Part shown: positions 58,319-61,802 of the stretch, one piece after another
Position numbering within the stretch: position 1 is the first letter of the stretch
Layout of the letters: every line of letters begins with the position of its first letter
Origin: Chlorokybus atmophyticus
Lineage: Eukaryota; Plantae; Mesostigma and Chlorokybus algae
Assembly: GCA_009103225.1 (NCBI GenBank)
Contig: RHPI01001965.1
Coordinates: forward strand, 263,114 to 327,113
Length of the DNA: 64,000 bases
Direction of reading: 5' to 3'
The notes under the pieces: model-generated
Told to the model about the DNA's origin: nothing
The model's database searches: none
Seen by the model: only the letters and a program-made list of their open reading frames with translations
Made by a program: the position numbers and the translations under genes

Positions 58319-61300
58319 CTACACTGCAACCGGAACTTTGGCGGCTGAAACACCTGATGCACGGCCTGCAGGGTTGTTGAGCATGGCTGCGGCCCTCTCC
58401 GCAATCATGATGGTAGGTGCGCCCGTCTGGGCACCTGGCAACATTGGCATCACGCTCGAGTCGATGACCCTGAGCCCCGACACGCCCTGCACTCGCAAAG
58501 CAGTGTCCACCACGGCTGTCGCATCCGATGCCGAACCCATTTTGCAAGTTCCCACCTGCAGGCACAAGAGACACAACACGTCAGACAGGGACTCCCTGCT
58601 GTTGTGACACATTGATGCCAACTGGCGAACTGCTTACAATTGCGTTGGCTGAGTGGAGAGTCTTGGCAATGTACTCGTCCATCTGCTCGTCCGTCTGCAC
58701 TTGGGGGCCTGGGTACAGCTCGCCGATACTGTGGCCTTTCAGTGCTGCTGTCTCCGATAGCTTGCGCGCCAACCGAATGCCGTCTCGCAATGTCTGACTA
58801 TCATCAGGGTTGCTCAAGAAGTTGGGCCGAAGCACAGGCTTGTCATGCGGGTTTGCACTCCGCAGGTGTATGGAACCACGGCTCTTGGCGCGCACCGCCA
58901 CCAGCTGTCGCACACAATCGGCCGTCACTAACACTGCATGCTTGCACGCATCTCATTGCCAATGATTTGTCGTGCAACCTGCAGCTCACCTGGAATGTAA
59001 AACCATCAGGCCACTGCTTAACCTCTCCCTTGCCCCACTTGGCATAAGCTTGCAAGGCATCCGGGTCCATTGACAGTGCAGCCACGAACCGAAGCTACAC
59101 GAGACAATTTATGGTTAGCGCACAAATGGCCCTAAGGACTGCTTGACTGCTTGACGATGTCTTGTCTGGCACGGCTTACCTGCAGATCGGGCAGCTCGCC
59201 TGGCCTTGTGGACACGAATGCTCCATGATCGCAGCCAGTGGAAGTCAATGGACCACGCCCGCGCAGCAGGAAGTTGAGCACTGCTGCCGGGTTGGGGATG
59301 CTGACCCCTGCACATGCAAGCTTACTTTTGCACCGTCCCAGCAAGATTACTTAGTTCTAACACTGGTGGCTGAATTGTTGCTTACCATCCTTGAGATAGA
59401 TTTGACGATTGATCGATACATCCTTGTCCTTAACCTTGTGCGTCAGAACAATCGCAGGATGGTCCTGCATGTTCTTGCCCACGCCTGGCAAGTCCACCAG
59501 GATCGGCAGCCCCAAGGATGTCAGCTCCGCACCCTGTGAAGCGCAACAACTGATGCTGCTGATCCAGTGTCGGCCAACAACTTTATACCATCCCATCACG
59601 TACCGGCCCAATGCCACTCAGCATCAGCAGTTGTGGCGAGTGGACAGCTCCAGCAGTGAGAAGAACTTCGCCACCTTCCTTGAGCTTGGCTGTTGCCTTG
59701 AACCCCTCCTGTTCGAGCAGCAGCAAACCAAGCACAGCCTTAGCCTGACAGCAAACAGCCGCATGCACGACTGTATGATGTTCAATACGAGACAATGATG
59801 CTCACCCCGTCGTACTCTACACCCCTAGCCACAGGGCCAGCCTCTCCCGTGCGCTCCATGACAATGCGAGTGGCATGCGCAGAGGTGACCACTGTAAGGT
59901 TCGGGCGGCTGCGTGCAGGCTTCAGGTATGCTTGAGACGCGCTGCAGCGCCAGCCATTGTCTGTTGTCACCTGGAAGGGCCCGAACCCCTCCTGCCCATG
60001 GCCCCAGTCATTAAAGTCGTAGTTGCGCTTCATGCCCGCCTGCTGACCCGCCTCAAAGAAACGGTTGACGAGCACATTCTCGTATCTCGGATCTGACACC
60101 TTCAGCGGCCCGCTATCATTGTGAACGGCAGACTTGCCTCGCGAATTGCCCTCTGCTGTCTTGAACCAGGGCAGAACATCCTCAGGACCCCACCCTTCTG
60201 CACCCGCCTCTACCCAAGCCTCGTAGTCTGCAGCTGCTCCACGCATGTACAACGTTGCATTGGTACAGCTGGAACCCCCAAGCACGCGCCCGCGCGGCAG
60301 GTACACGTTGCGGCTTGCGACCTTGGCTTCATTCTCAGAGAAGAGGTTCCAGTCAAATTCTCCAAGGAAGATCTTTGTGAAGGCAGCCGGGACCTTGACC
60401 CTGTAGTCCGAGTCCTCGGGACCGGCCTCAAGCACCAGCACCTTCTTGTCGCCCGAAGCAGTCAACCTGTTGGCCAGCACGCTGCCCGCAGCGCCACCAC
60501 CCACGATTATGTAATCATACCTATCGGAAGAGCTTGGGGCTGCTTGGCAGCTGGTCTGAACTCGTGTAGCGCCTGAGCTTTGCCGTCTGTAAGAGCTTGC
60601 GAAGCTTGTGAGGGTGGGCACCGACTCTGGACAGCAGCTCAACAGGCGACGTGTGTGTGCGCCGCGTACTGCACCATGCTGCACAAAGAGCATAGCAAGC
60701 TTTGTTTAGTCAAATATAACAACTTCATACTATGCGATGCTTGTGAACACAGACACTTCAGCAACTGATGAACTACAGGAGCATCCACCGGCACAACAGC
60801 AACCAGTGGAGCACTGACTTGCCAACAGTCTTAACATACAATTGACTCATCCTTAGTGACCAATCAAACATGTTGCGTGACCGACAAATTGATCACATGG
60901 CGTGCATGCATAGCTGCATGCAAAATGCAGGGACTGCAGTAACCCGGCAGAGCTCAAACAAGGCCGTCCATCCGACAGAATGTTTCACTTCAAATGTAAA
61001 ACATGGCGCAAAGTCCAGCAGATTAACAGCCAGCATGCACCCGAAATATGCTGAGTTCATGTTGATTGCACAGGATGTCAAAAGTCTGGTTGTCTGACTG
61101 CACTCTCACGGCCACTATCAGTGCGACCTGAAAAGAGAGCTTGTTGCTATCCATCTGTCAATTGCAAACAACGGCCTCACCTTCACCAAAATGTGCGATG
61201 TGGTACTGTTTAGACAAACGGGCAGGCGCAACGACAATCCCTCTCAAGTTGGTGACCTCGCTCAGCGCAAGCTGGGCGCAACTGCTATGCGTGCATCCAT

Positions 61301-61802
61301 TGACTAATGGACGCAGGACTTGGCTGCACAGCCACTGGCAGACAGCGGAACAACCGGCAATAACTACTGCGCCTTGCGCTGCACTGTTACTCAACTGCTG
61401 TGTCGATCGACTGCATGCACTGAACGTCCTGCCCTCACGAGCAGCAACTCTGACCAGACCAACACACCTCACCATCTCGGCTTGACTGGCCAATGCAGCC
61501 ATGAATGACAGGCTGAACAAGCATGAACTATGCTTTGACAGCTTTTCAAGCTGCACAAGCTTGAACTATGCTTTGACAGCTTTTCAAGCTTGTGCAGCTT
61601 GAAAAGCTGTCACAGTTTGAAGCTGCCCCATGTCTCCTTCATGGAGGAGGGTTGCAGCTGCAACCAACGACCTTCATGCACTAAACAAGCATCAACTCAC
61701 CTTGCTTCTGTGGTGAAGCTGTGCACGGGGCGGGCAGGCGTATGACGCGGAGGCTGACGCCGTCGTCGACACGGCGGCCGTCAATGCGGCTGTGGTCGCC
61801 AT
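58319..61802 (-). CDS. FAP: Fatty acid photodecarboxylase (FAP; algal GMC-family photoenzyme) with plastid transit peptide
   Basis: GMC fold ([20 protein letters not shown]) plus FAP-clade signatures: [27 protein letters not shown]|[25 protein letters not shown]|GTCKMG and [18 protein letters not shown]. Exon 1 (61802-61701, [11 protein letters not shown]...HRSK) splices in phase to 60678. Confidence 0.88.
61536..61612 (-). ncRNA. Perfect 26-bp fold-back in FAP intron 1 (candidate small-RNA precursor or template-switch scar)
   Basis: 61536-61561 is the exact reverse complement of 61587-61612. The 25-nt loop is a direct copy of 61524-61548. Confidence 0.35.

Follow-up and report, generated by a model that had tools for sequence, protein, structure and literature searches.

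Fatty acid photodecarboxylase (FAP; EC 4.1.1.106) forms an algal subgroup of the GMC oxidoreductases, belongs to the very few photoenzymes that occur in nature, and serves as a tool for light-driven hydrocarbon synthesis. The closest described system for the present case is the enzyme of Chlorella variabilis NC64A (CvFAP; PDB 5NCC, 6YRU, 6ZH7, 7AV4), a protein of 654 residues with two GMC domains and an N-terminal targeting extension. In Chlamydomonas reinhardtii (CrFAP, CHLRE_12g514200, P0214) a knockout phenotype and the thylakoid location of the product are given as established in PMC13326499, which cites Moulin et al. 2021, and among the brown algae candidates have been selected by full-length similarity of 39–45% to CvFAP, the presence of C432 and R451, and a targeting peptide, those assayed after selection on such criteria having formed hydrocarbons in E. 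coli (PMC13521276). The gene dealt with here lies in a stretch of 64,000 nucleotides of Chlorokybus atmophyticus (contig RHPI01001965.1, positions 263,114 to 327,113 of the forward strand; hereafter the window), where fragments of a GMC flavoprotein are spread over several reading frames of the minus strand between 58319 and 61802. We take this gene, with a probability of about 0.9, to be the Chlorokybus orthologue of FAP with its active-site set complete; this is what a first-pass annotation, made from the sequence without database searches, had proposed, and the tree placement, the signature residues and a CvFAP-like model fold all uphold the proposal.

The exon model derived from the window sequence comprises eight exons and 654 codons, and the eight exon translations are exact, contiguous substrings, with Gly410 as a split codon, of a public protein of C. 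atmophyticus (jgi/Chlat1/7646/Chrsp64S07121, 654 aa; hereafter P0164). In a word search queried with the complete Mesostigma protein it was the second match and, being identical to the exon translations, was used in the full-length analyses. In P0164, Pfam recognizes PF00732 GMC_oxred_N (E 2.6e-47), PF05199 GMC_oxred_C (E 1.4e-35) and, weakly, NAD_binding_8, and the GxGxxG motif that binds flavin adenine dinucleotide (FAD) appears as GGGAAG at residues 94–99 (exon 2, 60484–60501). In a representative search with exon 2 the best match was a protein of Mesostigma viride, below which the scores run from 253 to 183 bits without a clear break, so that FAPs and other GMC enzymes are inseparable by score, and a tree and signature columns are needed. 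The identity of P0164 is 54% to the Mesostigma protein at full length, 50% to the FAP of Chlorella sorokiniana, 49% to CvFAP over about 570 aligned columns, which bears out the alignment along the length of the protein proposed in the first-pass annotation, 47% to CrFAP, and 43–45% to stramenopile, red-algal and Cyanophora proteins.

The tree (IQ-TREE, LG+C20, 36 rows) was rooted on ten bacterial GMC enzymes, the outgroup consisting of the closest bacterial GMC only. The algal FAP clade, which includes CrFAP and the source-named FAPs of Chlorella sorokiniana and Nannochloropsis, is set apart from the bacterial GMC enzymes with a support of 100/100, and P0164 lies inside this clade and not outside it. 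Within the clade, the red algae and Cyanophora branch first, then the secondary-plastid algae and then the green clade (16 rows, 100/99), in which Chlorokybus and Mesostigma form a pair (98/95) that is sister to all 14 chlorophyte FAP rows; a quick tree with 62 rows gave the same picture, and the branch length of P0164 is ordinary (0.59, with a median of 0.56). The nearest relative is thus the Mesostigma viride homologue (Mv00775-RA.1, P0151, 655 aa), whose signature residues are as in P0164. CrFAP has its clade and active-site set in common with P0164, but it comes from a chlorophyte, its tunnel residues follow the consensus, and its N-terminal extension is shorter (its GxGxxS stands at 52, against 94 in P0164). 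The nearest non-algal relatives are bacterial GMC enzymes named “choline dehydrogenases” (e.g., Blastocatellia P0256), which share with P0164 the fold and the FAD-binding domain, but are without Cys432, Arg451, Gln486, the 457–462 tunnel loop and the N-terminal extension.

The active-site residues that the first-pass annotation had listed were all recovered in the alignments. Cys435 of P0164 (TGC, 59231–59233, within TSTGCDH), aligned via exon 5, is the equivalent of C432 of CvFAP; Arg454 (CGG, 59089–59091) is that of R451; Tyr469 (59044–59046) that of Y466; Gln487 (58990–58992) that of Q486; His571 (58653–58655) and Asn574 (58644–58646), both in HSANA, those of H572 and N575; Ala575 (58641–58643) that of A576; and Gln619 (58427–58429), in GAQTG, that of Q620. 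The arginine had been said to form only after splicing, and indeed its CGG stands second among the codons of exon 6 and is read as Arg in its protein context only once exons 5 and 6 are joined, the junction PDLQ/LRFV being real in the transcripts. With all of these residues, as well as with T430, V453 and T484, CvFAP and P0164 are identical at the equivalent positions; they differ in that P0164 has a loop after Y466 and a stretch after residue 519 that are each two residues shorter.

The signature columns were counted, in CvFAP numbering, in a 62-row alignment of 37 algal and 25 bacterial rows. Cys occupies column 432 in every algal row, where the bacterial rows have Ala, Gly and others; Arg occupies column 451 in 36 of the 37, the bacterial rows having mostly His or Leu; the consensus residues at Q486, N575, A576 and Q620 are each found in 35 of the 37; and His at 572 is found in 33 of the 37, against Glu, Gln and others in bacteria. 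The residues C432, R451, Q486, N575, A576 and Q620, all present in P0164, occur in none of the 25 bacterial rows at their own columns. Conversely, column 576 holds the classical GMC catalytic His in 25/25 bacterial rows, and column 620 holds Asn in 23 and His in 2 of them, where P0164 has Ala575, as in FAPs, and Gln619; the catalytic His and the His/Asn pair before the flavin that mark a classical GMC oxidase or dehydrogenase are therefore absent from P0164. The tunnel loop (about 457–465 in CvFAP) reads SMDPDALQA in P0164, while columns 457–462 are gapped in 23–24 of the 25 bacterial rows. Judged by these columns, P0164 carries every sequence feature expected of an FAP, C432 and R451 being also among the criteria by which the brown-algal candidates had been chosen, and its residue set would be catalytically complete.

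The same relationship appears when each exon is searched separately against the PDB structures. Exon 2 matches CvFAP with 259 bits, and the best non-FAP structure, a choline dehydrogenase, with 167 bits, which is no chance resemblance; CvFAP is the top match for exons 5, 7 and 8, and, among characterised structures, exon 5 finds FAP entries only, apart from one weak match (E 0.38). For exons 3 and 4, one non-FAP GMC structure each stands narrowly above CvFAP, which is within one to three bits, and these two exons, short GMC segments of general conservation, are not diagnostic of FAP. Exon 6, which has diverged most, is matched over its full length by CvFAP 450–486 (E 0.03); its top match, a designed repeat protein, was disregarded as a low-complexity match to DPDALQA. 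Exons 2 to 8 tile CvFAP, without slack where they meet, as 69–317, 324–357, 359–404, 414–449, 450–486, 487–577 and 579–647, and the tile junctions 449|450 and 486|487 fall exactly at the derived splice sites, which lends independent support to the exon model. A structure of residues 60–654 of P0164 was predicted with AlphaFold2 from a 57-row alignment, with a mean predicted local distance difference test score (pLDDT) of 93.7 and a predicted template modelling score (pTM) of 0.93, disorder being confined to the remaining residues of the putative targeting peptide and the last 14 residues. When the model is compared with the PDB by Foldseek, the nine best matches are all CvFAP (template modelling score 0.89–0.95, 49% identity), with a root-mean-square deviation of 1.5–1.8 Å for eight chains and 3.9 Å for 5ncc_A, and the next match is a Streptomyces alcohol oxidase with 36% identity.

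By analogy with the established mechanism of CvFAP, from which we infer both the light-dependent decarboxylation and the spectrum of products, a free fatty acid would occupy the hydrophobic tunnel with its carboxylate beside the flavin, held by Arg454 together with Asn574, Gln487, Tyr469 and water. The FAD, once excited by blue light, would take one electron from the carboxylate; CO2 would be released, and the alkyl radical would be reduced and protonated with the aid of Arg454 and Cys435, yielding an alkane or an alkene with one carbon fewer than the acid.

The gene is expressed and spliced as modelled. Transcriptome runs of one organism from studies of 2013 and 2021 were used, and four of them (X1 to X4) were aligned to the gene stretch; two runs contain approximately half of the 3.8-kb stretch, counted in words, which matches the exonic share. 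A contig of X1 (2,325 nt) lies in eight pieces on 61890–58047 without a mismatch, and reproduces all seven derived joints, including the first intron of 1,022 bases; taken together, transcript contigs of four runs and two studies bear out each of the seven introns as well as the first exon upstream. The introns all read CT..AC on the plus strand, which corresponds to GT..AG on the minus strand. The mRNA extends from a 5′ end near 61890 to about 58046, near which the poly(A) tail begins, seen in X2 as a T-run on the plus strand adjoining 58045.

Read on the minus strand, the 5′ untranslated region (61803–61890, covered by contigs X1 and X2) contains no ATG ahead of the start codon, the ATG at 61802 being the first of the mRNA. 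An in-frame ATG at 60693 (MLFVQ...), at the head of the long open reading frame (ORF), was rejected as a start, as it sits in intron 1 and not in the mRNA. The coding part of exon 1 (61701–61802) provides 34 codons, residues 1–34, presumably the first part of a plastid transit peptide, and its joint to exon 2 (61701|60678), which skips the 1,022 bases of intron 1 (60679–61700, GT..AG), is present in all four runs; the first exon predicted some 1 kb upstream and outside the long ORF is therefore real. Exon 2 (59806–60678; residues 35–325) encodes the remainder of the presumed transit peptide and the FAD-binding GMC N-terminal domain (PF00732), and is followed by exon 3 (59604–59708; residues 326–360, with transcript joints) and by exon 4 (59386–59533; residues 361–409 and the first base of Gly410, ending in codon phase 1). 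Exon 5 (59180–59307) covers residues 411–452 with Cys435, exon 6 (58990–59094) residues 453–487 with the FAP-specific tunnel loop, Arg454, Tyr469 and Gln487, and exon 7 (58638–58904) residues 488–576 with His571, Asn574 and Ala575. The coding part of exon 8 with the stop (58319–58555) gives residues 577–654, including Gln619 (coding 58555–58322, stop 58321–58319), and is followed by a 3′ untranslated region (58046–58318) seen in contigs X1 and X2.

The runs X3 and X4 contain the FAP gene, spliced alike, with approximately 94% identity to the window, and belong to sibling strains or species filed under one label. Their indels, at 61738 and 61744, remove 9 and 6 bases in frame from the putative targeting peptide of exon 1, and 24 of the 25 coding differences, by our own count among the 40 of 201 strain differences listed, lie at third codon positions, the single exception being in the disordered C-terminal tail. 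Since the listed differences are almost all at third positions, and the indels are confined to the putative targeting peptide, the mature enzyme is under purifying selection. As side observations on the same contigs (window 58002–61841), their divergence and the exon 1 deletions fit cryptic sibling species within Chlorokybus. At the fourth intron (window 59308–59388), the joint of X3 is displaced from 59306|59385 and non-canonical (TG..CA, one letter lying between), most likely because a substitution at the splice border of the diverged strain affects the alignment. In intron 1, where Tandem Repeats Finder reports a 38-base tandem duplication at 61512–61590, a diverged X3 contig of low depth (about 7) aligns at 61174–61552, and could represent precursor RNA still unspliced, a small transcript of its own, or a repeat.

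The N-terminal extension distinguishes P0164 from its bacterial relatives, in that 93 residues precede the GxGxxG motif, against 7–9 in these relatives, the other algal proteins checked having 51–100. Of its first 86 residues, rich in Ser, Thr, Ala and Arg, 42 are Ser, Thr or Ala, 9 are basic and 2 are acidic, a composition that appears typical of a green-lineage transit peptide and suggests that P0164, a nucleus-encoded FAD enzyme, probably goes to the plastid. The split transit peptide of the first-pass annotation thus stands as regards the extension and its division, with 34 of the 93 residues on the upstream exon, and a plastid role is suggested by the composition.

Several points weigh against the identification as FAP. 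Overall identity does not discriminate, P0164 being 46% identical to the Blastocatellia enzyme P0256, itself named choline dehydrogenase, so that the identification depends on the tree together with the signature columns; the plastid targeting has been judged from composition; the codon-position count is a sample; five tunnel residues depart from the green-algal consensus; and no enzymatic or hydrocarbon data for the Chlorokybus FAP or the alga, nor biochemical reports on the FAP of Chlorokybus or Mesostigma, were found in the literature searched. The first of these points would suit an ordinary GMC oxidoreductase of the choline dehydrogenase or alcohol oxidase type, as would the fact that Pfam returns generic GMC domains and the weak NAD_binding_8 only, and that many relatives are named “choline dehydrogenase-like flavoprotein” or “alcohol oxidase.” However, the catalytic His and its Asn or His partner, kept in all 25 bacterial relatives, are replaced by Ala575 and Gln619, the Cys/Arg pair and a tunnel loop found only in FAPs are present, and P0164 is placed with full support among the algal FAPs, which makes such an enzyme very improbable. 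Still less probable is a relic that is decaying or no longer expressed, or a chlorophyte contaminant in the assembly: the absence of FAP from all later-branching streptophytes examined (PMC13326499) would agree with a relic, but the frame is intact, four transcriptome runs from two studies show the transcript spliced and polyadenylated, the sibling strains differ almost entirely at third codon positions, the nearest relative is Mesostigma and not a chlorophyte, and the gene has seven introns and lies within a 64-kb nuclear window.

The remaining alternative, a member of the FAP clade with a shifted function, that is, with another substrate range, such as shorter or unusual acids, or with another light-driven or dark reaction on lipids, depends on the tunnel. 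The stretch that the first-pass annotation had singled out there ([18 protein letters not shown]) corresponds to the tunnel loop of FAP, and the tunnel residues of P0164 were compared, in CvFAP numbering, with 24 green rows. The consensus is kept at T430, V453, Y466 and T484; the departures are Ala for G455 (Ala in 7 of the 24 rows), Ser for A457 (Ser in 4), Met for L458 (Met in 1), Ala for G462 (Ala465, 59056–59058; Ala in 3), and Trp for F469, which is unique in the sample (1 of the 24). The Mesostigma homologue differs from P0164 in having Gly at 462, Phe at 469 and Pro at 458. Position G462 is the one most often engineered in CvFAP. There, the substitutions G462V/I/F/A give more propane and butane from C4–C5 acids, and G462 substitutions have been modelled to weaken the binding of palmitate (bioRxiv 10.1101/640474), both of which would speak for a changed function. 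Nevertheless, the catalytic and carboxylate-binding residues are all kept, Ala is the smallest possible addition at 462, the two further green-clade rows with Ala at 462, one from Scenedesmus and the other a related metagenomic sequence, belong to otherwise ordinary FAP lineages, and the branch of P0164 is of ordinary length, so that we regard a shifted function as improbable. Within the identification as FAP, that the substitutions displace the chain-length preference is a modest and fair hypothesis, no more, and a natural tunnel variant that would prefer shorter or differently shaped substrates over C16–C18 acids seems to us rather doubtful; if it were true, the deepest streptophyte branch would have a different hydrocarbon profile, and would offer a ready-made scaffold for biocatalysis.

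Mesostigma and Chlorokybus make up the earliest-diverging clade of the streptophytes. Because the two sit at their species-tree position, sister to the chlorophytes, the Chlorokybus gene was inherited vertically; the first streptophytes therefore still had FAP, and its loss followed on the lineage leading to Klebsormidium, Chara, the Zygnematophyceae and the land plants. The charophytes were said to lack FAP in the 2020 preprint of Moulin et al., while a study of the algal CER1/3 (New Phytol 2026; PMC13326499) reports a putative FAP in some streptophyte algae, its Table 1 giving a single FAP gene for Mesostigma (two genomes) and for Chlorokybus (one genome), both of which lack CER1/3, and CER1/3 but no FAP for Klebsormidium, Chara, Spirogloea, Spirogyra, Zygnema and Mesotaenium. 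The presence of FAP in Chlorokybus and Mesostigma dates the loss in the plant lineage: it is later than the earliest split among streptophytes and falls on the branch in which the CER1/3 route to alkanes takes its place, a conclusion already published (PMC13326499). A Chlorokybus FAP is thus not new: the gene model, exon 1 included, is public as Chrsp64S07121, and both the presence of the gene and its evolutionary meaning are in print; beyond PMC13326499, no paper with both “Chlorokybus” and “photodecarboxylase” was found in the literature searched. What is added here is a transcript-verified gene model, a residue set that would be complete for catalysis, the purifying selection among sibling strains, and a short list of natural tunnel substitutions; the Chlorokybus FAP opens no new question, the mildly interesting angle being that of the natural tunnel variant.

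Two further observations concern other members of the clade. A protein of Cyanophora paradoxa (P0015; EukProt tig00000113_g5640.t1, 644 aa) has the full FAP signature, with Cys, Arg, Gln, His, Asn, Ala and Gln at 432, 451, 486, 572, 575, 576 and 620, and groups with the red-algal FAPs (100/98), whereas the 2020 preprint of Moulin et al. had found no FAP or GMC enzyme in Cyanophora; if it is not a contaminant, FAP would be as old as the ancestor shared by all three lineages with primary plastids. The Mesostigma orthologue is represented by two isoform models, Mv00775-RA.1 (P0151, 655 residues) and Mv00775-RA.2 (P0001, 526 residues), the shorter of which shows PF00732 only in the precomputed Pfam hits, with no GMC C-terminal domain on record, and would, if real, be inactive.

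Finally, directly downstream of the FAP gene in the window, on the same strand, an ORF at 57020–57496 begins in an Ala/Ser-rich manner resembling a transit peptide, with a run of about ten Ser, and probably forms the first exon of the gene that follows.

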